Shown here: one piece after another, positions 22,932-59,546 of the stretch
How the letters are laid out: each line of letters opens with the position of its first letter
Position numbering within the stretch: position 1 is the first letter of the stretch
NCBI GenBank assembly: GCA_965202585.1
Contig: OZ241826.1
Coordinates: 56,358,001 to 56,422,000 of the forward strand
Length of the DNA: 64,000 nt
Direction: 5' to 3'
Source: Thalia democratica
Lineage: Eukaryota
Translations under genes and position numbers: made by a program
Notes under the pieces: model-generated
Seen by the model: the letters and a program-made list of their open reading frames with translations, nothing else
Databases searched by the model: none
What the model was told of the DNA's origin: nothing

Positions 22932-24206
22932 AACAGCTTTTTTTCCGGTGCATAACTTACTAAAAATATATAACAGAATGCATTTCATTATCTTTAAATT
23001 TATTTAAGTACTTTCAAGTAGGACTCGTCAGAAATTGTTTCCTACTGGATTGGAATGAATACAAATTGAAATAAAATTATACTGCAGTTTAAAGTTTTAA
23101 GATATAAAATGACGTAATAATCAAATGTTAAAAATTAAATAAGTGCAAAACAATGCTAAATAATGCTAAACAAATTTGGTATACTAATAAAACTCGGTAG
23201 AATTAAAACAATCTAAATAAAAAAGCGATAAGAATTTTAAATTAAAACTATGCTTAAAAATAAAGTTTAACAAGAAACTAATTACTTTAAAATTACTAAT
23301 ATAAGGATTTAAAAAAGTCTAGTTTGGTAAACGAACTTTTTCTGCTTACATAAACTGGGCCTTAAAGATTGAATACATAAGGCTTCCAGAATATGCAATT
23401 GAAAAGAGTTCTCCGCTCTCACTAAGACTGAAAAATTGTCCTTTTTATAATTTTTAACACACTCAGGATTGTCCAACAAATGTTGCCCAATCGCCGAGAA
23501 GTATTTTTTAGTTGGTTTCTCAGAACGGCCATCAAACCACTTTTTCAAGACTTTCGGAACATGTTGATCGATTCTTACATGAAACCTTTGAGATGTTTTT
23601 CCCACGTAGTCACTACCACAGTGACAATTAAGTTTATAGATGATGTTTGATGGCCGTTCTGAGAAACCAACTAAAAAATACTTCTCGGCGATTGGGCAAC
23701 ATTTGTTGGACAATCCTGAGTGTGTTAAAAATTATAAAAAGGACAATTTTTCAGTCTTAGTGAGAGCGGAGAACTCTTTTCAATTGCATATTCTGGAAGC
23801 CTTATGTATTCAATCTTTAAGGCCCAGTTTATGTAAGCAGAAAAAGTTCGTTTACCAAACTAGACTTTTTAAATCCTTATATTAGTAATTTTAAAGTAAT
23901 TAGTTTCTTGTTAAACTTTATTTTTAAGCATAGTTTTAATTTAAGTTTTTATCGCTTTTTTATTTAGATTGTTTTAATTCTACCGAGTTTTATTAGTATA
24001 CCAAATTTGTTTAGCATTAGCACTTATTTAATTTTTAACATTTGATTATTACGTCATTTTATATCTTAAAACTTCAAACTGCAGTATAATTTTATTTCAA
24101 TTTGTATTCATTCCAATCCAGTAGGAAACAATTTCTGACGAGTCCTACTTGAAAGTACTTAAATAAATTTAAAGATAATGAAATGCATTCTGTTATATAT
24201 TTTTAG
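22932..24206. mobile_element. 5'-truncated Penelope-like element with an inverted duplication of the GIY-YIG end and 3' region
   Basis: GIY-YIG ORF NIIYKLNCHCGSDYVGKT...LHILEALCI. Arms 22960-23537 and 23645-24206 are reverse complements apart from a 16-bp indel. 13-bp TSD AAAGAATTGTTTG at 22919-22931 and 24207-24219. Confidence 0.92.
24135..24160 (+). ncRNA. Hammerhead-ribozyme-like core in the Penelope terminal repeat (mirror copy on the minus strand at 23006-23031)
   Basis: CTGACGA-gtcctactt-GAAA followed by the palindrome AAGTACTT; 4-bp stem I (attt/aaat). Stem II is imperfect. Confidence 0.5.
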
Positions 24207-24429
24207 AAAGAATTGTTTGTTCGCGTTAAAAACAGCGATTTTTGATTTGGTTATACATTGGTTTTTAATGTTTTTCAATAGTTAAATGTTTGCAACTATG
24301 TTATCTAACTAAGTAGCTGTTGTTACAACAATGAGAACATATTTTATGTAGTTGTTAAATTTATTATGTTTATATTAATTGTAATTTTAGCTCTGTTATA
24401 ATTCCGGTTTAAGTATACTGCTTATTTTC

Positions 24430-24966
24430 TTAACGGCGTCTTCTTTTGCAGGACCTTTTTCTTACGACGGTCCTCTTTTTTGGCTTGCATACCCTCTTTT
24501 TGGGTTTGCGACGACGGCGGCAGGTCTTCCTTTTAGGCTTTTTTGCCTTCTTGCAAGACCTCCTCCTGCGTTTTTTGGTCTTCTTGCAGGATTTTTTTGC
24601 CTTCTTGCGTCTGCGGGTACGCCTCTTCTTCTTGGGCTTGCAGGAACGCCTTTTCTTCTTGGGCTTGCAGCGACGACGTCTGCGTTTGCAAACCTTCTTG
24701 GTCTTCTTGGAAGATTTCTTCTTACCGGCAGATGGGTCGACGATTTGGAAGCTTCCGTTGTTGTTCTTCTCAACGACTCCCTTGGCGCACAACTTCTTAA
24801 GAACTTTAGCAGCGACTTTTGAGGCTTTCTTTTCTTTCAAACCGGCTGATGCAGCCAAAGAAGAAACGATTTCCTTGCTTTTGCCAGCTGAGACGCTCAG
24901 GGTATCCCTGACAACGTTCTCGTAGTTGGCTTCTTGAGCTTGGGTTTGTTGCTTTGATCGAACCAT
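24430..24966 (-). CDS. Histone H1-related, protamine-like basic protein (178 aa), copy 1
   Basis: Intact intronless, locally GC-rich ORF. N-terminal ~80 aa resembles a degenerate H1 winged helix (VLKKLCAKGVVEKNNNGSFQI versus H1 ALKxLVxKGxLxQ..GASGSFKL). The 97-aa tail has 38 K, 29 R and 8 C. AATAAA at 24360-24365. Confidence 0.8.
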   Translation of the reverse strand: MVRSKQQTQAQEANYENVVRDTLSVSAGKSKEIVSSLAASAGLKEKKASKVAAKVLKKLCAKGVVEKNNNGSFQIVDPSAGKKKSSKKTKKVCKRRRRRCKPKKKRRSCKPKKKRRTRRRKKAKKSCKKTKKRRRRSCKKAKKPKRKTCRRRRKPKKRVCKPKKRTVVRKRSCKRRRR

Positions 24967-25971
24967 GATGCTTCGCTTTTTTACTTAAATTTTTTCGTTT
25001 TTTGACATGACGTACCGGACTCGAACCATCTAAAGTTTGACATATAACCTGAAAAAGTTAAGTTTATAAGCATGAGTAGCAAAATAATTACACAAATAAA
25101 GTAACTTTTACGATTTCTATATAATGAAGATAAATATTTTTGTACAAATATTAATCTTGTATGTTTTTTGAACAGTTTTATCTTTGTGGAATATTTAAAT
25201 TTTTATAATTGACTTACTATTATTTAAAAATTTATAAGTAATTTAAATTTGTTTCTCATAAACGGATATTTCGCAGTGAACTAACCATAAAAAACTATAA
25301 AAAAATAGCTAGTGGTAATTAATTAAAATTAAAGTTAATATATAATACCGATATGTATGAGAGTATGTTTTAAAAAAAGTGTATTTATGAGTTGGTTTTA
25401 TATAACTTCTTTTAAAAATTTAACTATTTAACAAGGTGCACTGAAGATTAATTATGCTAAGAATTTTTTATAGACGCAATAACATTGACGTTTTAACAAA
25501 TAACATCTAGTTAAGTGTTTTGTAAACTTTTGAAAAGCTGACAAAGTTGATAATGGAAGAAAAAGATTGTTTACACTTTTGAAATTGATACTTTTACTTT
25601 ACATATGAAAATTGTATGTACAGGTAGAGAAAAAATGTTTCAAGAACTTATTAAAGGATTTAGTTTTAGTACTTTATTAAAGGCTCATGTTCCATAAATT
25701 ATAGCAATTTACTAACTGTGTACACCAGGGTTTCCCAAACTGTGGATATCGGATTTCAGGGGGTGTTAGTTTATAAGTTGGAGAAAAAGCAATTAAGTAA
25801 TAGTTAAGTACAGGGGTGATATCTTATAAATAAGGGAGATTTTTTATTCAATTTCTACCAATAGGGCGTGTAAGCATTAGATTCTTGTTCGCCGAATGAT
25901 ATAGAAAAAGAAGAGTTGTTTAATGTATCATAACATTCTACTTGAATAAGGCTATATTTAAGTAAATTAAT

Positions 25972-28770
25972 ATGTCTGAATTGGAAATAAAAAGTATCAT
26001 TGAAAACTGCTAAGTTAGTAAAGCAACAAAGGAAAGTTTGCTACAACTAGGAAGAAAAAATGATGCAAAATTTCAATCAATGGAAAAAGAAATTCATAAC
26101 TTGAAAAGTCAGTATGAAACTAAAATCAAGGAACTTGAAATCAGTATCCAGAATACACAAAAAACTCATGAGGAGGTCTACAAGAAACAAACTACAGAAA
26201 AGTCTCTTGATGACAAAATCAGTTCACTAAATGAAAGTTTTATGAAATTTAAAACAGAGTTCTGCAAAAAGTTTGATAATTTTGAAAAGAAACTTTCAAT
26301 GTATGCAGAAGCATCAACAAACTCCTTTCAAAAACAACCAGACTTTATCAGTAACATTGACTGTAAATTGTCACTAGTAACACATCAAATAAATGCTGAA
26401 CTGAAAAGAAATTGAAAGAAAAAAAAGCTTTAAATGTCATAGTATTTAATATTCCCGAAAACATTAGCAATACATCAGTTTATACGGTAGAAAATGCAAA
26501 AAATGACCTCAGTAAAATACAAAGTTCTCTAGGTTCCAACAAGATAGCTGAAACTGAATTAAATACATTATACCGTATTGGTATATACAACTGCAATAAA
26601 ACGAGACCAATAATTTTGAAACTACTGACACAATCTAGCAGAAAACGACTATTGAGTCTAAGAAACCTTAAAATACAGCATCTGGGAAAACAAATTAGTA
26701 TCTACATTAATATTGGTCGAACAAAATCAGAGATGGAACATTTTAGAAAATTGAGATTTGAACTAAAACAAAAACAAGCAGAAGCTGAAAGTAAAAATTT
26801 TAACATAAGATACCTTATAAAACAAAACAAAATAGTTGAAAGTACTCAACTGCCCTTTCGGTTTAACGCCCAGGATCTCTGGGCCTAATAAGTCAAGCTT
26901 CAACACTGACATGCACCTTAAGTCATCTAGTTTAATCTTTAATGGTTCTAATACAAAGGCCTCAGGCACAGTTTTTTCTAATAGTTTAACCTCTAGTAGA
27001 GATTTATTTTTAAATGTTTCATATACAAATGTAAGATCTATTTAAACAAGATAAGCTTCATTGAATGTTATATGTGTACACAAAATTTAGAGTTTTTTAT
27101 AACTGAAACATAATTAAATTCAAATGTTATTGATTCAAATTTTCGTCCTCTAGGGTATAATATAATCCGTAATGACAGAATAGGCAGGGGAGGAGGCGTT
27201 GCTGTTATATTTAAAAACTTTTTAAAATTAATTGAAGTAAAAACTAATTTTGTTTCATCTGATGGTTTTGATTTTTTATGTTTTGATTTGATTCTTAAAG
27301 GACTCAAATTGAGATTTTTATGTGTCTACATCCCTCCAAGTTCCTCTAAATCTCTAGCTGTTGTTTCAAACATGATCGACTTAATCAGAAACCTTATTCC
27401 AAAACAGTCTCCTTTTTACATTTTAGGTGACTTTAATTTGCCAAATACAGACTGGAATATCCCAAGCACAACCTACAATGACTGTCACAAATGTTTTATT
27501 AAATTTTGTTCAGATAATCTCCTTACACAACTTATTGACTCACCTACCCATAAGAACGGTAACATCCTCGATTTACTGCTTTGTAATTATATGGCATTAG
27601 ATAGAGTTAAGTTTCATTTGGTTGATTCACCTTTAACAAATATAAATGATCACAATGTTATTTTGTTTGGGATAAGTGTTCACAAAAGTAAAAAACCATC
27701 TCCTAAATCACTCTATCCAGATTTTCGTAGAGCAAATTTTGAGAATATTAATAAATTTTTATCAGAAATAAATTTGAAAGTTCTTTTTAACAACTCAAAA
27801 AATCTACAAATGTTTTATGATAAATTTATCAAAACAATAAATTTTTCAATCAAACAATTTGTGCCTTTAATTAAACAAGACAGAAAAATGAAAACATATC
27901 CTTCTGATATAAAAAAGCTGTTAAGAGAAAAACTAAAACTCTACAAACAATGTAAGCTAGATAAGCAGATGATACAAAAGTACAAAACTGTATCAAAAAA
28001 ATATGAAAAAGCAGTGAAAGTGTTCAATATAGAACATGAAAAACGTTTTTGCCAAAACACAAACTCAAAAAAATTCTACAGCTATGTAAAATCAAAGCTC
28101 AAGTTAACACCTTCTTTACCTGTATTAATTAATGAAAATAATTTTCCATTAATATCAGAACTTGATAAAGCCTCTTTTTTTAACAGGTCCTTTCAAAAGG
28201 TATTTATTAAAGATTGTGATGACAAAAATTTTAAACTTGTTAGTAAAAAGTGTTTGGAAATGAAAAACTTCTTCATAAGCAATGATGAAATAATTAAGTC
28301 TGTTAATCATTTAAAAGATAAAATAATCAGAACGCCTGAAAACATTCCTTCATATTTTATTAAATGTACTATTTATTCCCTTATTCTTCCAATTTCACTA
28401 ATTTTTAATTGTTCACTAGTTACATCCGCTGTACCAAACCAGTGGAAAGTCTCATATGTCATACCAGTGCACAAAAAAGGTAGTAAGTACAACCCTTTAA
28501 ACTACAGACCCATTTCTTTGACAAGCAGTTTTTGTAGAATTTTCGAACATATAATTTCTCTAAAAATACTCTATCATCTCTTTTTAAATAAGATAATTTC
28601 ACATAAACAGTTTGGTTTTCTTCCTAATCGATCATCTAGTTATCAACTGTTGAATTGCTTTAAACTCATGGTTTGTTTCATTTCTAAGCAATAAGTCAAC
28701 TAAAGTTATTCACACAGACATTCAAAAGTCTTTTGACTCTGTATCCCATTTTAAACTAATAAAGACTTTA
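25972..28770 (+). mobile_element. CR1-like LINE, decayed and 3'-truncated: ORF1 (25972-26888, stop plus frameshift) and ORF2 (APE endonuclease and start of RT)
   Basis: ORF1 with LNVIVFNIPE / YRIG / KTRPIILKL; APE motifs NVRSI, ITET, RNDRIGRGGGVAV, LGDFNLP, ILDLLL, NDHN; RT entry VIPVHKKG, NYRPISLTS, QFGF; homology ends at 28770. Confidence 0.9.
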
Positions 28771-29539: not shown

Positions 29540-30640
29540 TTAGTAATTATGACTCTTTCTATTCTGTGTTACAATTTCTTTTTTATTAAAGGAATCAAAT
29601 ACTGCAGAATTGTTTTTCTCTTTAGCTAATATGTTGCTTGATACGCTAGTTTGCGATTTTGTTTTTGAAGAATTGTAATAGCCTGAGTCTTGTTTATAAC
29701 TTTTAAGCTGCACTGTTGGCACATGATATTTTGGCTCGCTATCATACTTTTTATTGTAACTGATATTTTTCTGCTGTTGTTTCTGGTGTTTTTCTTTGCT
29801 AAGTTTACCTTGTTTTGCTGTAAAAGAAAAAACTTGCTTATAAGCTCTATTAGCTTTTCTTTTCCGCTGTTGAGGGTTACTTGAATAATAGTTTCCGATT
29901 AATCTTTTTTCTTGAGACTTTTGGTTGTAGTTTGAATTCTTATCTACAGCATATTTAGACCCTTGAACTGTTTTACCATTAGGACCTGTCACGTTTGCGG
30001 CTTCTGACATGTTATTTTTACCTACAACAATATCAAACTGGACTTTTTCTCCTTGTGCAAGAGACCTTAAGAATTTGTTAGGGTTGTTTTTGACGATAGC
30101 TGTATAATGAACAAAAATATCGCTGTTACGATCATCCCGATGAATAAAACCGTAACCTTTGCGAACATTAAACCATACTACTTGACCAGTTACTCCAAAT
30201 GCTATAGTGTTTTTGGTTACCTGAGCTTTTTCTTTGACTGTGTGTGACGCTTCAGTTATATTAAATGTTTTTGTGGGTAAGTATTGATGACATGACAAAC
30301 ACTGTGCTATGTTAACAGTGTTACTACTATTCCCATTGTACGATTCTTTTGGTTTAACATTATCTCTATCTTGATTATTTTGACGATAATTGTAATTATG
30401 ATTAATACCATTATCTCTTAAATGAAAATGTTGTTGATTATTAGGACAAACTCGCTTATGGCAATTTATTTTAGACTTATAATGATTTTGCTCATACTGC
30501 TGTAGTCTATCGTAATTAAATTGATTAGGTATTAATGCGTTTTCTTTATAAGCATTCCATATGGCTTGTCCTTTTCTTTTAAAAACTTCTAAGCTTTCAT
30601 CAAAATGTTCCCTAATCTTATCTTTGATCGAAAAGGGCAT
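29540..30640 (-). CDS. 366-aa ORF with a Y-box-type cold-shock domain (CSD at ~30196-29942)
   Basis: [59 protein letters not shown]...[21 protein letters not shown] aligns with the YBX1 CSD, including RNP1, RNP2, the NNPxKxLRS loop and the VQGSKYAxD extension. Intronless. Confidence 0.88.
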
Positions 30641-42940: not shown

Positions 42941-43843
42941 TTGTGTATCCAATTAAATTATTTATATTTATAACTTGTTAGTTTTATTTATTGCATCATT
43001 TTTTATATTTGTTATTGTTTGTTTTTATTTTTCTATGCACAATAAGTGTAGCCCATTTCGGCTGGTAGCGGGCCTAAAAACACGACAACTATTCAAATAA
43101 CACTAAGTATAATTATTGGTATGCATCATTATAAGCAGTTAACAGTTTTTGAACATTTGTTTTTCAGTATTCAAAGGTTTTTATGAAGTTTGTCTTTGAA
43201 AAATATAGAAAATTTTAATAATTAATTACCACTTTGTTTTTTATGATTCTTTTGACTACTTATTTTAATATTTATCAAAAATAATAATCTTATTTCAATT
43301 TAATTTTATTTTCAAACGTTTTCTAGTTACTAAAAATAAAGAATGAACTTCACCACACGACAAACAACACAGCATACGAGATAACCCGTCCGTGGGTTAT
43401 TTCAGATGCTGTTGTTGTTGGTTGTTGATAATGGCTGAAATAAATGCTGGTTAGTTACTAAAAGTTAACTAGTAACTAAATATATATGATCTATATGACG
43501 TAGTTTTGAAAACTTATTTGTAAAATTATTTTGAGTAATGTATTTTTTTTCTAAAACTTCTGGACGTTATGTTTTACTGCAAAATAAACACACCACAAAC
43601 CAGACGAACAAAAAAATAAAAAGAGAACTTTGTAATTTTTGTAAAAACTATGAATGAGCAGTAAATTAAAAACTGTTACATAGCTAGTACGAAATTTTTA
43701 AGGCAGAAACTATAGTTTAAGTTATTATTAAATATAGACAGCCGTTAATTAATTATAATAAAATTTAAAACTTTTAGTATACTTTGCTGTTATTTATTTG
43801 ACTTAAATATCATGTTATGATATTTTTCTTTACTGCTTAATTC

Positions 43844-44380
43844 TTAACGGCGTCTTCTTTTGCAGGACCTTTTTCTTACGACGGTCCTCTTTTTTGGCTT
43901 GCATACCCTCTTTTTGGGTTTGCGACGACGGCGGCAGGTCTTCCTTTTAGGCTTTTTTGCCTTCTTGCAAGACCTCCTCCTGCGTTTTTTGGTCTTCTTG
44001 CAGGATTTCTTTGCCTTCTTGCGTCTGCGGGTACGCCTCTTCTTCTTGGGCTTGCAGGAACGCCTTTTCTTCTTGGGCTTGCAGCGACGACGTCTGCGTT
44101 TGCAAACCTTCTTGGTCTTCTTAGAAGATTTCTTCTTACCGGCAGATGGGTCGACGATTTGGAAGCTTCCGTTGTTGTTCTTCTCAACGACTCCCTTGGC
44201 GCACAACTTCTTAAGAACTTTAGCAGCGACTTTTGAGGCTTTCTTTTCTTTCAAACCGGCTGATGCAGCCAAAGAAGAAACGATTTCCTTGCTTTTGCCA
44301 GCTGAGACGCTCAGGGTATCCCTGACAACGTTCTCGTAGTTGGCTTCTTGAGCTTGGGTTTGTTGCTTTGATCGAACCAT
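43844..44380 (-). CDS. Histone H1-related, protamine-like basic protein (178 aa), copy 2
   Basis: Same protein as copy 1; two synonymous differences (44009, 44123). AATAAA at 43793-43798. Confidence 0.8.
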   Translation of the reverse strand: MVRSKQQTQAQEANYENVVRDTLSVSAGKSKEIVSSLAASAGLKEKKASKVAAKVLKKLCAKGVVEKNNNGSFQIVDPSAGKKKSSKKTKKVCKRRRRRCKPKKKRRSCKPKKKRRTRRRKKAKKSCKKTKKRRRRSCKKAKKPKRKTCRRRRKPKKRVCKPKKRTVVRKRSCKRRRR

Positions 44381-47300
44381 GATGCTTCGCTTTTTTACTT
44401 AAATTTTTTCGTTTTTTGACATGACGTACCGGACTCGAACTGCCTAAGCTTGCTTTAGACTGCAACTGAAACAATTAAGTTTTGCACAACTTTTCGTTTT
44501 TTTGTACGAGACAGCTTAAAATTAATTTGTAGGTGTTATATAATGTTCTAACTTTATCTCGACTGTAAATTCATGAAAGTAAACTTGACTTTGAAAAATA
44601 GTTAAGTAGCAAAACTACTTATCTATGTTACAATTCAAATACTAGTTTTAAGCTTTTTACTAGTTTACCTACTCAAATTCTTTGAAGTGCTACAGTTAAT
44701 CGACATAGCTAATTTTTAAACCGCAATATGCTACATTAATAAAAATTCCGTCAAATTTCATATTTAGAGAGGTTTTTTAAAGCTTCATCTAAAAAATGTA
44801 TATCTTATTGTTGATTTTCTAAAGTTTTATATAAAAAAGTAAAACTTAGTTTACCACCTCCTGAACATTTCGTTAGTTTTCGTGATTGAAAATTTTTTGG
44901 CCATTCATTAACTTATTGCAGTGAGAAAAACATTAGTATTACGTTGTAAAACCAACTTGTTGAATAAGAAAAAATGACAACTGACATTAAAGTGTTGGTA
45001 GTTTTGTATGAAATGTTTGAAAGTAAGTTTTTATATAGATCTAACTAATACTATTTGAACAATAGAAAAGTATCAATTTATCTTATAAGTAATTTCTTAA
45101 TAATTTATGGTCAAAATTTGTAGGTTTATACTTAAAAATTCGTCTAACTTACATTTTTTATCTATTCTTTTCAGTAGACACATCTTGTTGGTCAAAGCTT
45201 CATAACAATAAAATATTTTACGCTCTTTTGGCATATTAAGTTTTTTTTAAGCTTAGGGAAAGTGGTGTATGATTTGCTGCAAAAATACGCTTCTAAAGTC
45301 TATAGAAGTTTATTCTGTTTTCAACGAACGTATTATCTGTCTTGACTTACACATCATGAAAACTACAGCGACCTAACATGCGCTCACGCTATTTGAGGAA
45401 GTGTAAGATGCATTTTGTCACTAGCTGATTTTTATTTAACCAATTTTCCAAACGTTACCAGCTTTTTATTCTTTGTAACTTTTATTATTGCAGGGTTTCC
45501 CTAAACTCATATTCATAACTAACCTCTTGGCATAAGTTTTTAAAATAAATTTTCTGGTTTCGTCTTTTTACTAATAAAATAATCATGTATATTTTTGTGA
45601 CCTTACTGTTTATTGAGCCCTAATAGTCAAAATTGCCCCAAGGGCGATATCGTTCACCCTTAATAGAAGTTTTGAGTGGTGAGCGTTGAAAAAAGCTAAG
45701 ATAGAACAAAAATTTTTAGAATCTAGCTTGCAAAATGAGTAATTAAAAAACTAAACAGTGTAGAAAAGACACAAATTTGACTACCAGCTGCTGTAGTACT
45801 ACTTATATATTATTGGCTAAAATTTTATTATGTTTATTTCTAGCGTAGTTAACTGTATTTAATTAGTCACAACTACATTTATTGTATGTTTGGGTAGGGA
45901 TTTTAAAGTTAGTAATGTACTGCTGTATTGTTCTTGCTTCTCATTTGCATAAATAAACCGTATTAAAAAAACGCACAGTACTACGACCCAAATTTTTACA
46001 AACAAAAAAGAAAGATTAAAAAAATCATAAATGCTAGCCGAAGTTTTGCAAAACAGACATCAAATTAGCAAGCATATTTTATAATCTTAATTACCCCGAG
46101 TGTGTAGCAAAGTTCAAAAACAGTGTTATGTTACAATCATCAGAATAAATCGCGCAAGTTATTGAAGCTTTTAAGTGTTGTTGCCCTTATGATGTCATGG
46201 TTATTACTGATATATACCAAATTAGTTAATTTGTACCTCCAAAAATTTTTCTTCACACTTAATAAAAACTCACAAAAATTTTCTTTTTTTTGGTTTTTCC
46301 CTTTGTGAAAACTTTTTCAGCTCGGTGTTAAAAAGTTTTGTTTTTATAAGGATCCTAATTTTCAATGATCTACAATAAAACTGGTTGAAAATTTATAAAC
46401 TAACAATTCTACATCTAATTTTTCTAAGCTAGAATATAACAGGTTAACTTCATAAATATCTAACTTTTAATTGGCATTAACAGTTTGGAAAACTTTCGGA
46501 TTCGACTAGAACCCTTGGATCACTATTTGATACAAACATTTTGACAAATTTTTTTTTATATTTTTGGTACGTGCATATTCTATGAAAAAAGAGAGTTGGA
46601 AAAAAAGATTTGACCAATTTGGTAAAATGTAACAAGTAGGTTATATTTTTCATTTTTTTTCATTTGCAAAGACTCAAGCGTCGAAAACAATATAAAACTA
46701 ACTACATACAAGCATTTTCCTCTTAATTTACTAATGATACAATTAGAAGAATAGATCAAATCCATATTAAATCGTTTACCTGAGGAGTCCTGCTGCTATA
46801 CGATAATGAAATAAAAACGTGATATGATTAGTTTTCTATTCAAACTTATGCTATTTCAATATACAAAATGTAGAATTTATTTTATCGTATATATTTAAAC
46901 GAACGAGACAAATACTAACAATATTTACTAAGTAAACATTTACCTATGTCAGTAATTAAAGTTTTTTTTTCTATATTTGTAAATTTGGTGGTTAAAACAG
47001 AAAATGCTTAAATTAATCTAATAGAATGTATTTTCAAAACAACAAAAAGTCTACATTTTTGTGATATTGAACTTATTAAACTAAAAACTAAAAGAGAAGT
47101 TTTAAAAAACTTCTGTCTAGATCTCTGAAACGAGTATTAGCTTCAATTATAAAAATAGTCAACATAAAAACTTACTTTAAATAAATTTGTTTTAAAATTT
47201 ACGTTAAACTCGCTAAAAACTTATTTCTTCGATCTAAGAAGTAAACATTTAAAGTCTTAAGAATAGTTCAATCAAAAAAAGGAACGAAAAAAAACAATGT

Positions 47301-56300: not shown

Positions 56301-59300
56301 GATTTTTACACATTGTTTCGGACTTCACAACATAACTTTGTACATGTATAAAAATATAACTAAATTAAAACCCATAACTTTAAAAAAAATCCTCGTGCGC
56401 TTAGTCTTGGATTTAGTCTTACAACTCGATCCAGGAGCAACAAAGTCACTAAAACTTTAATAAAGAACCTATTTATACACCAACAACCAACCAAGAGGTA
56501 TAATACAAAATTTCGGCACAACTTCTCAGCTTCATAATATACCAAAAGTTTGATTAAATATTATTCTTTGTTTATAATAAATTTTAGTGCAATTTTGTTT
56601 GTTTAAAATAACAATTTGAATAAAAAACGTTGCGTATAAAACTAGCCATAATTTTACACCACTTGTACTACAAAATTTTATAAGCGCTAACTACCTGTCA
56701 CCTTAGTAGAGTATCAAATTTAAAAAATATAACCTAACAAACCTTAATAACGTTTGGTTTTTGCACTACCCTCTTAGCAAAGTCCATGACAGCATCATCA
56801 TAAGTTGCACTGAACAATAGAACTTGACAAGTAGTTGGAAGGGACTTGTGTAGTTTAATACTCATTTCTTTGAAACCTTGTGTATCAATCATGACATCAG
56901 CCTCGTCTAATACAAATACTTTTATTTGCTTCATATCCACTACCTGAAAATTAATTTACGCTTAAGATTTTTAAATCTAAAAAATATTAAAATACTATTA
57001 GTTATAACGTAAGTCACACTTACACATTTTTATTTTTTCAAACATATATTAATTTTTTGAGTTGTAGCCCTTTAAACATATTTTTAGAATTTGAATTTTC
57101 ATGCAACCCTTTCTCCCTAGGACCTTAATACTGCATTACTTTTTTTAAATTCTAATATAAACATTTTGAAATTTTAGGATAGAGTAGTTTTTTAAACATG
57201 ATTTAGTTATAAAACTATTTTAAAAAATTCAACAAACATACTCGTTTTTTAATACACCACTCTAGCATTGTTCCAGGTGTTCCAATAATGATTTGTGATG
57301 GAATTTTGCTGTTTCTGCTTACTGTCAATATAAAAATTTATATTATTATAATAGTCAAAAGTTATAAAAAACAAACTATAGACCTATAGTTGGTATTAAA
57401 AAATTAAACATTTATGCCTAATTTAACAGATTTAGAAAAATTAAAGAAAATCTGAAAATAAAGTACTGTTTAATTAACTATTACAAAAATTTAATATATA
57501 TTAGTTGCTTAGACGTTTTCTAATGTTTTTTAATATCTAATCAACTTCAATACTAATACCAATAAATAGAACATTAGTTTTATATTTTCAGTAATGTAAA
57601 TAAATTCTGTTTGAGAATGTTTAGGTATTTCTGATTTTATATTAATTTTCTTTAAAACACATTCAGTCATAAATCAAATTATACATTTAAAACTTAATTT
57701 ATGATTACATGGTAAGTTTTTAAGTTACAATTAGTAAAAGAGTTTTTAAATAGTTTAAAAATGATTACTTAAGGTTGTTGTATGTTTCAAAATTCCTTTA
57801 ACCTAGATTAGAAATTCTTAGGATATGGAATGCTTATAAAAAAACAAGAATAATTTTAAATACTTATCTTGGTGAGATTAGACTCAGAAATTCTAAAAAC
57901 ATTTGATTAACAACTGTAGGAGAAAGTCTATTGTGGCCTTTCTATTTTAATTTTTCCATAAGGAAGTTGTTTAACTCTACAACTTAAATCTCAAATTTTT
58001 CTTTGGATTCTAAAAGAATTATTAAAAATAAACCGTTGCTTTATTATTAATGTAAAATATGACTAATTTTTGAAAAATAAATTACCTTTTCTATGGCAGT
58101 TTTGCCACTCTTATAGTCAAAAAAAACTATCCAGAGTGACCAGAAACTGCTTTAAGTGACTCTAAACTGTCCTGAGTCATCCTGAGGTATATAAAATTCT
58201 TTTCAAAAGTTATACATATATATAAGTTTTTGAACAACATTTGTTATATTATATCAAAATACAGAGACTGGAAAAACTAAATCTCATTCAAGATCAAGAA
58301 TAAAACTGGACTGAGATTCTTAAATCTTTAGACCTATCTTTAAATTTATTTTTTTATTTCAAGTAACCTTTTTTTTGCCTAAATTAAAAATATGATAATG
58401 TTCAACTATATCTTGCCACAAAAGCATTAGAAACATAAATAATTAAGAGAGGGTTGCCAAATGTTCTTGAAAATTTTTCAAGATTTATTAAATTTTATCC
58501 AGTTTTATTAAAAAATAATTTTTGATCTATTTTTAGTATGAAGTTCCAAAATTACAAAATACTATTGATATTTGAATATTGTACTAGCTAAATCAGTATC
58601 GTCTTGTAAATTTACTATGTTATGAGTTCAGCTATTAACATACTGTAAGATATAGATTGTTTAAAATTTATAAAAGTAAAGCTATATTTGAAAGTAAAAA
58701 CTAAAATATTCAGTATAAGTTATAACACTATATAAGGTAAATACAGAACTGTATTTCTACTATCTAGCTAATTAACAGATTTATATTAGATAAAATATTA
58801 ATAATTTTTAACTTCAAAACTCTACAATAGTTTTTTTAATGTTATACTACAAAATACTTATTTGAAAAAATATCTTTAACTAATAATTAGGAACGACTTA
58901 AAACCATGGAAAATACAAAAGCACACTGATAAATACTTAAACTTTAGCTCATTTAGAAATAAACTGTTCCCTTACCTTTATTACTTTTCACGGCATAAGC
59001 TACAGAAAGACCTTTTGCAGTTAAATGTTTTCCCATGTCATTTACTGTTTTTCCAGTCTGTAATGCCAATTCATAAGTTGGCAAAAGGCAAATGCATTGA
59101 GGTACTTGTCTTTCTAAATCAACTCTGTGCAACATAGTCAATACAAAGGCTGCTGTTTTACCAGTACCAGATTGAGATTGAGCAATCATATTCTCAGGTG
59201 GATTAGCAAGAAGCATGGGTAATGCAGTTTCTTGGATTCTTGAAGGGTGAGAAAACCCCATATCCCAAATTCCTTGCAGCAAATCATCCGGAAGGTGTAA

Positions 59301-59546
59301 ATCTTGAAAATTTTTTATGGAATAAAGAGGTGAGTTTGGATCTTTCTGTTGCACTTCTAATTTGACTGTATTGCTACCTATGTCAACTAGGGTCTGTCTA
59401 AGTTCTTTTTGAAGAAGAGATGTTTCAGCTTTAGTAGCAGTGTCTGCCTTTTCTTCTTCATTTACTGAATCTCCAGCACCATTTATTTTAAGATTTTTAA
59501 ACTTTTGTTCTTGTGCATCTGCAGCTGCTGCCCATTCATCTGCCAT
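47397..59546 (-). CDS. DDX19: DEAD-box RNA helicase DDX19/DBP5. Coding exons 59546-58976, 57321-57242, 56943-56743, 48503-48259, 47965-47810, 47559-47397 (stop TAA)
   Basis: Q motif and motif I ([20 protein letters not shown]), [48 protein letters not shown]; DDX19-specific [14 protein letters not shown] and [20 protein letters not shown] junctions with consistent phases. Confidence 0.95.
48641..49312. mobile_element. Diverged member of the TTAA/GGGCAT family in a DDX19 intron
   Basis: TTAA then GGGCATAGG start; internal blocks similar to 62459-63137; ends near cctatgcg. Confidence 0.55.
49427..50156. mobile_element. Tc1/mariner (pogo/Tigger-like) MITE
   Basis: TA on both sides; 25-bp TIR CAGTAGACTACCGCTTAAGTACGCA with one mismatch; subterminal AAGTACGCACT repeats. 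Confidence 0.85.
50201..51998 (-). mobile_element. Cluster of reversed CAGGG-family copies: ~50201-50430 (short), ~50740-51609 (long, reverse of 2431-3310), ~51692-51998 (short)
   Basis: Direct reverse-complement alignment to the copies above; terminus GTGGCAACCCTG at 51609. Confidence 0.8.
52310..52650 (-). mobile_element. Diverged 3'-end relic of the 22932-24206 Penelope family; ends approximate
   Basis: aaagtcttgtctggtatacgaacttattttgctcacataaactgggcc aligns with 23313-23360; acgtaataatcaa is also shared. Confidence 0.55.
55487..55706. mobile_element. Old hAT/Charlie-like MITE
   Basis: CAAGGGTCAGCA...TTGCCGACCCCTG termini; TSD not recognisable. Confidence 0.45.

Follow-up and report, generated by a model that had tools for sequence, protein, structure and literature searches.

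A two-copy gene of the salp Thalia democratica for a candidate winged-helix sperm basic protein with periodically spaced tail cysteines

Described sperm proteins of similar design

H1-like sperm proteins of the PL-I type that contain cysteine have already been published (Zhang, Lewis and Ausio, 1999, cited in PMC11607694), and hence the design treated here, in which a winged-helix head precedes a basic tail with cysteines, is not new, as far as the citing account describes those proteins. Bivalve PL-I shares with the salp protein a winged-helix core and a tail rich in lysine and arginine, and according to the same partial account some of its members carry cysteine; it is the major protein of sperm chromatin, a role that for the salp protein is proposed by analogy, and its H1 core is easily recognised by sequence, whereas the salp head is invisible to Pfam. 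Within the tunicates, the H1-derived PL proteins of Styela and Ciona are the textbook case of the passage from H1 to protamine (Lewis et al., 2004; Saperas and Ausio, 2013; both as cited in PMC11607694 and PMC13148410). They belong to the same subphylum as the salp but are ascidian and not thaliacean proteins, and the comparison with them is by description, as given in the citing texts. Two insect proteins resemble the salp protein in several respects. Nv-PL1 of Nasonia vitripennis has 216 amino acids, begins with a winged helix that recalls H1 and continues in a disordered C-terminal half rich in arginine and lysine, with several cysteines; it is testis-specific and required for male fertility, as its RNAi fertility phenotype indicates (PMC13148410). 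Nv-PL1 and PpH1V1 of Pteromalus share with the salp protein the winged helix, the tail of lysine, arginine and cysteine, and a comparable size (PMC13148410, PMC12216123); however, an exhaustive search with the salp head revealed no sequence similarity to these insect proteins. Outside animals, Marchantia has a PL precursor that contains a winged helix and undergoes oxidation of its cysteines (PMC13251019).

In Drosophila, the chromatin of sperm is locked through disulfide bonds, which the egg thioredoxin Deadhead reduces (PMC5122968, PMC5133442), and disulfide stabilisation is held to have arisen independently in distant groups (PMC5122968). Mst77F, which is H1-family-like, and Mst35B are cysteine-bearing sperm basic proteins of Drosophila, with the same mechanism as the one proposed here; they differ in that Mst35B has an HMG box, in that the passages compared describe no regular cysteine period, and in their unrelated lineage. 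A regular ladder of cysteines at 11-residue steps finds no mention in the literature compared, parts of which were available as excerpts. A literature search on salp sperm chromatin yielded nothing useful.

Here we describe a gene of the salp Thalia democratica located in a stretch of genomic DNA of 64 kb (hereafter the window), the product of which combines an H1-like globular fold with a Lys/Arg-rich region and has a composition between that of histones and protamines, as PL-type proteins do. We give about even chances to the full reading, in which the gene, replication-independent, polyadenylated and present in two copies, encodes a PL-type sperm nuclear basic protein that is most likely descended from H1; the sperm role, taken by itself, is somewhat favoured. 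The origin of the design in the salp lineage was probably independent. What is particular to the salp gene is the regular period of its cysteines, the retention of this spacing in an ortholog, and a parent H1 that itself bears cysteine.

Gene copies, transcript and neighbourhood

The genome of Thalia democratica comprises 790.7 Mb and has a GC content of 25.3%, the lowest among 38 tunicates, a value that its coding sequences exceed by about 17 points (PMC13746493). Among marker domains, the arthropod cuticle domain PF00379 was absent from the assembly and the GH6 half of tunicate cellulose synthase was not detected exon by exon, neither of which is decisive. The window contains no N and has a GC content of 27%, as compared to 48% for the open reading frame of the first copy of the gene. 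This copy, taken from the list of open reading frames and its translation, is an intronless frame running from ATG to TAA at 24430-24966 on the minus strand and encoding 178 amino acids. A genome-wide six-frame search (801.8 Mb) revealed exactly two loci, both in the window and with identical proteins, and no further paralogs were found when the genome was searched with a profile of two head sequences, which returned the two copies alone. The second copy, with its coding sequence at 43844-44380 on the minus strand, was placed by whole-genome search, self-BLAST and alignment within a block at 43831-44440. According to self-BLAST the duplicated block measures 611 nt (24416-25026 versus 43831-44440) and is 99.3% identical, and the two coding sequences differ at two positions, both synonymous. 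In the two DNA runs that span the whole region, the depth of the gene contig is twice that of the single-copy flanks. The block takes in 60 nt upstream of the ATG and ends about 16 nt past the stop codon, and the flanks outside it are unrelated; such sharp edges are explained either by a very recent small duplication or by gene conversion restricted to the functional unit.

The upstream part of the block, which spans 60 nt at 24967-25026 on the minus strand and was delimited by alignment of the copies, by the end of the RNA contig and by motif search, is the same in copy 2. Given that these 60 nt agree in both copies while the flanks are unrelated, the core promoter and a short 5′ UTR probably lie there. 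An A/T-rich, TATA-like stretch is found inside it, together with TACGTCA, a CRE-like half-site located 42-48 nt 5′ of the ATG (25008-25014 and 44422-44428, both on the minus strand), which we take as a weak lead, since the window contains the motif 8 times where 3.6 occurrences would be expected. The sequence GGTTCGAGTCC upstream of the gene resembled the T-arm of a tRNA and was discarded as such, as ARAGORN and Rfam gave nothing in the window.

An RNA contig is colinear with 24342-24974, free of gaps and of introns, and begins 8 nt 5′ of the ATG. The 3′ UTR of copy 1 covers 24342-24429 on the minus strand, with AATAAA at 24365-24360 and a poly(A) addition site near 24342-24346; beyond 24342 the contig carries 18 non-templated T (on the plus strand), which represent a poly(A) tail about 18 nt past AATAAA. 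Transcription has been observed for the 3′ end of copy 1, and the RNA contig with the 3′ UTR of copy 1 bears the copy-2 base at 24709, which may be a polymorphism or the result of contig collapse. The gene sequence was found in 13 RNA runs, several made from oligo-dT or poly(A) libraries, in about 10 marine plankton studies, and its transcripts reach a word depth of about 1000-2700 in one bulk plankton RNA run (X7), figures that come from contigs of whole-plankton metatranscriptomes and carry neither expression level nor tissue. The Histone3 stem-loop of Rfam was not found in the window, nor around copy 2 even at E<=0.1. The poly(A) signal and the lack of a histone stem-loop, both pointed out in the earlier note, were borne out by the AATAAA and the non-templated T of the RNA contig on the one hand and by the blank Histone3 search on the other. 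Replication-dependent histone genes possess a 3′ stem-loop in place of poly(A), and by this usual criterion the salp gene is replication-independent, because the stem-loop is absent and a poly(A) tail is present, unlike in canonical H1.

These results also bear on whether the locus has a function at all, since a chance open reading frame, a pseudogene or a transposon fragment might be expected from a neighbourhood rich in repeats and retroelement pieces and from a duplicated block with such sharp edges. We regard this as highly improbable, given the polyadenylated transcripts in many independent studies, the restriction to exactly two copies with identical proteins and synonymous differences only, the excess of GC in the open reading frame over the window, and an ortholog, P0021, which has the same design and a head 39% identical.

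Several other features lie close to the gene. Just downstream of it, 23950-24220 is a very high-copy repeat, with a summed contig depth of about 100,000-330,000 in two DNA runs, the flanks being at about 75. An inverted duplication (22956-23537 versus 24210-23645, 96.6%) bears open reading frames in which the stretch YKLNCHCGSDYVGKT appears GIY-YIG-like by eye, with Pfam blank at E<=0.001. A LINE-type endonuclease fragment is located at 27288-28691 on the plus strand (E 1.4e-11), a 366-aa open reading frame with a cold-shock (Y-box) domain at 29543-30640 on the minus strand (E 8.6e-22), and an exon of a DEAD-box helicase at 58956-59546 on the minus strand (E 2.9e-16). Proteins of the Y-box and DEAD-box kinds frequently regulate RNA in the germline.

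The winged-helix head and its relation to histone H1

The head of the protein was modelled with AlphaFold2 twice, once within the whole protein alone and once as the head together with ortholog P0021, and both models show the same fold, with helices at residues 4-25, 30-41 and 45-62 and strands at 65-67 and about 72-75 (pLDDT about 85-90). The wing is a beta-hairpin bearing GSFQI. The domain occupies residues ~14-77, corresponding to 24736-24927 on the minus strand (AlphaFold2 and VIA-align), and the protein as a whole has the tripartite layout of the H1 type, with residues 1-13, 14-77 and 82-178 as its parts. The winged-helix-like core that the earlier note had seen, and for which it had proposed structure prediction, is thus what both models contain. 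Comparison by VIA-align with 48,161 PDB representatives gave Z values of 8-10 to many winged helices, the best of which (9-10) belong to cullin WHB, IclR-type and Z-alpha domains, with PadR too at or above the level of H1. Globular domains of H1/H5 reach Z 8.1-8.7, with the highest identity (22%) among the top rows; named linker histones include H1 on the nucleosome (9j8o_n, Z 8.7, 22% identity), GH5 (1hst, Z 8.6) and H1x (Z 8.2). Since other winged helices outscore H1/H5, structure alone gives the fold and not the family. When the full-length model was searched against Swiss-Prot folds, the top match was a sea urchin late histone H1 (E 4.5e-3) and five more H1s were among the top 20, and fold searches of the PDB, AlphaFold clusters and the ESM Atlas returned a generic winged helix and did not single out H1.

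At the level of sequence, the HMMER comparison with PF00538 suggested by the earlier note came back empty, with no match to the protein or to P0021 even at E<=10 and no meaningful Pfam family otherwise. H1 was not found in a profile search of PDB sequences, and BLASTP against the genome's own H1 aligned an 18-residue wing alone (E 0.3). More sensitive comparisons gave a signal of a different kind. When a profile of the two heads was aligned by hhalign with 19 diverse H1s, the whole domain fell in register with P=0.0024, the hhalign probability being just 8-12% (P 0.0024-0.004), and when the comparison was repeated with the globular part alone, the observed score was matched by 1 of 300 column-shuffled targets. 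An HMM of the H1 globular domain scored P0021 at 9.9 bits, a value as high being reached by 3 of 2000 shuffles (p=0.0015), and the salp protein at 4.8 bits (shuffle p=0.043). In these alignments KRGS of P0021 is matched with the turn KERKGSS of H1, and GSFQI of the salp protein with GSFKL of the invariant H1 wing. The language-model search listed nothing but clusters of linker histones (0.82), and we use this as a lead only.

Comparison with the canonical H1 of the same genome adds a further line of evidence. This H1 is present in over 150 tandem copies on contigs C7, C8, C10, C167 and C342 (for example L003:1243-1800, minus strand), matches PF00538 with 104-107 bits, and carries a histone stem-loop directly past the stop codon (31-34 bits). 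Its tail contains two KKCAPKK motifs and, three residues from the end, KKSCKK, a motif that is also found in the cysteine-rich tail of the salp protein, which itself ends in RSCKRRRR. The two proteins share the head followed by a basic tail, the GSF motif of the wing, cysteines in a lysine-rich tail, and KKSCKK; they differ in that canonical H1 has its many tandem copies, a stem-loop, a Lys/Ala/Pro tail almost free of arginine and a Pfam match, whereas the salp protein has two copies, a poly(A) tail, an arginine-rich tail and no Pfam match. Among close H1 sequences in public data (94-99% identical), 21 of 23 carry one to three tail cysteines, and in a related plankton species group of about 88-92% identity 15 of 22 H1s have a KKC terminus, some of the others being clearly truncated, as compared to almost no tail cysteine in 35 H1s that the same search returned from other phyla. 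Tail cysteines are unusual for a replication-dependent H1. The earlier note had started from the premise that tails of H1 and PL proteins are poor in cysteine, which fails in this lineage because its canonical H1 already bears one to three of them, and the cysteine ladder of the salp protein looks like an elaboration of a trait already present in the parent H1.

The blank PF00538 search and the hhalign probability of 8-12%, together with structural Z values tied with or below those of unrelated winged-helix families, would fit a basic protein of the sperm type with a winged helix of non-H1 origin and a convergent likeness to H1, and the weak profile signal could indeed come in part from features common to winged helices. 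Such an origin nevertheless appears rather unlikely to us, given the two family-typical H1 motifs that stand in register, the profile tests that beat the shuffles (p about 0.002-0.004), the H1 layout of a head plus a basic tail, the KKSCKK in common with the genome's H1, and the first rank of H1 in the unbiased Swiss-Prot fold search. We consider it likely that the head descended from linker histone H1. Of the claim of H1 derivation made in the earlier note, the part that stands is what the profile signals, the two motifs, the H1-like layout and the shared tail motif suggest, and the part that does not is any match to the Pfam Linker_histone family.

The cysteine ladder and its proposed role

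The basic tail, residues 82-178, is encoded at 24433-24723 on the minus strand and was characterised by its composition and by shuffling tests. Its 97 residues are 69.1% lysine plus arginine (38 K, 29 R) and include no aspartate or glutamate and no phenylalanine, tryptophan or tyrosine, which agrees upon recount with the 69% and the absence of acidic and aromatic residues given in the earlier note. Arginine makes up 30%, lysine 39% and cysteine 8% of the tail, and arginine makes up 17% of the whole 178-aa protein. True protamines are small, consist mostly of arginine and lack a globular domain; with its 178 residues, its overall arginine content and its folded head, the salp protein falls outside that group, and it is conceivable that the protein is cleaved into a protamine-like tail.

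Cysteine is found at residues 60, 93, 100, 109, 127, 138, 149, 160 and 173, and translation confirmed both the eight tail positions and the 11-residue steps among four of them that had been reported earlier. Successive cysteines of the eight in the tail lie 7, 9, 18, 11, 11, 11 and 13 residues apart, those at 127, 138, 149 and 160 following one another at exact steps of 11, and residues 93-178 can be divided into eight modules, each with cysteine first. At the DNA level a single 27-nt repeat is still recognisable in the tail, in 2.6 copies at 24601-24670 (Tandem Repeats Finder). The tail was shuffled 100,000 times to obtain p values. The evenness of the cysteine spacing, expressed as the coefficient of variation (CV) of the gaps, is reached with p=0.003, a minimum gap of at least 7 with p=0.009, and three equal gaps in a run with p=0.011; serine or threonine immediately N-terminal to cysteine, as seen for five of the eight, has p=0.0003. 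That lysine or arginine follows each of the eight is true as well, though near the composition expectation (p=0.045), because the tail is 69% K/R. The periodic tail cysteines are non-random.

Beyond same-species sequences, the sole relative found by HMMER among 1.84 billion representatives is P0021, a 152-aa protein from a Tara Oceans metatranscriptome, and word-based and exhaustive searches with the head yielded nothing besides same-species plankton sequences and this protein. When run accessions were compared, P0021 had none in common with the related species whose H1 has a KKC terminus. We treat P0021 as an ortholog, since in the salp genome it matches only the two loci. Its tail differs in sequence and consists of 60 residues (R 24, K 20, C 7, G 5, S 4), with cysteine gaps of 11, 11, 8, 11, 8 and 9, the CV of which has p=0.0002 and the minimum gap p=0.00006. 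Judged from the two sequences, cysteine spacing is conserved between the orthologs though the sequence of the tail is not.

Public catalogues hold further variants of the salp protein. P0006, a same-species in-frame variant from plankton RNA, has a tail 22 residues shorter in which two cysteine modules are absent and threonine replaces Cys149, giving gaps of 11, 11, 22 and 13; it hints at a polymorphism in module number, and as it derives from a protein-level assembler an assembly artefact is possible. All three forward frames stay open through the tail (24462-24773 and 24533-24691, both on the minus strand for the additional frames), and in P0002, P0004, P0007, P0011 and P0015-P0020 the correct head is fused to other tail frames, while in P0001 the wing is triplicated. 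The frame-shifted proteins that share the head were considered as isoforms and rejected, being read as chimeras of protein-level assembly at runs of lysine codons.

For the tail we infer cross-linking by disulfides or zinc, and phosphorylation. In the mechanism that we propose, the N-terminal winged helix would dock on DNA, and the tail of 97 residues, rich in lysine and arginine, would neutralise the charge of the phosphates and condense DNA during spermiogenesis. Its cysteines, about one per 8-11 residues, would with the 11-residue spacing come to lie on one face if the tail is helical on DNA. In an alpha-helix, 11 residues make three turns, and the stretch 113-141 is helical in the AlphaFold model, at only moderate confidence. 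After deposition, the tail cysteines may oxidise to inter- or intramolecular disulfides or bridge zinc, which would lock the compacted chromatin. The egg would then reduce the cysteine links at fertilisation, as in Drosophila (PMC5122968). The serine or threonine before most cysteines, in the context [KR][KR][ST]C[KR], would probably serve as phosphorylation sites that control deposition, and the [KR][KR][ST]C contexts appear to resemble sites of basophilic kinases. Phosphorylation cycles are usual for protamines.

A nuclear role in sperm has to be weighed against two others. Cysteine in a linker-histone tail is not sperm-specific in this genome, because canonical H1 has it too. Together with the frequency of the transcripts and their depth in bulk plankton RNA, this would suit a replication-independent linker-histone-like protein acting outside sperm, for instance in the oocyte or embryo, in cells that have differentiated terminally, or in the rapidly dividing stolon of the asexual phase; the cysteines would then be employed for redox regulation rather than for locking sperm chromatin. 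We regard this as a minority possibility, as the tail is much richer in arginine (29 of 97 residues) than the Lys/Ala/Pro tail of the genome's H1 and has no acidic residues. Known linker histones of oocytes and embryos are less basic. The nearest described designs, moreover, are sperm proteins (PMC13148410, PMC11607694). A function apart from chromatin, whether in the nucleolus, in RNA binding or as a precursor from which a histone-like antimicrobial peptide is released, is quite improbable in our judgement: winged helices do bind RNA and proteins too, such domains being among the fold matches, and peptides rich in lysine, arginine and cysteine can be antimicrobial, but the N-terminus is polar with no signal peptide by inspection, the tail is protamine-like, and the nearest neighbours in fold and features are DNA-binding chromatin proteins.

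Returning to the reading as a PL-type sperm protein, it can be extended to a speculative scenario, which we hold to be doubtful, in which salps possess a lineage-wide redox-sensitive linker-histone system and the tail cysteines of canonical H1 were expanded into a sperm ladder with an 11-residue period, arisen independently. If this is true, the ladder would act along the helices of the DNA-bound tails as a zipper of regular disulfide or zinc links, a geometry unlike that of mammalian protamines. Tunicates are the classic case of the passage from H1 to protamine, for which the data in the reachable literature come from ascidians, and the gene described here is a candidate sperm chromatin protein of a pelagic tunicate that would add one more independent gain of cysteine in sperm basic proteins. 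The cysteines in the tail of the ordinary H1 suggest a source for the ladder, and the fact that the diverged orthologs appear to have kept spacing rather than sequence offers a testable hint on how such a tail may be arranged along DNA.
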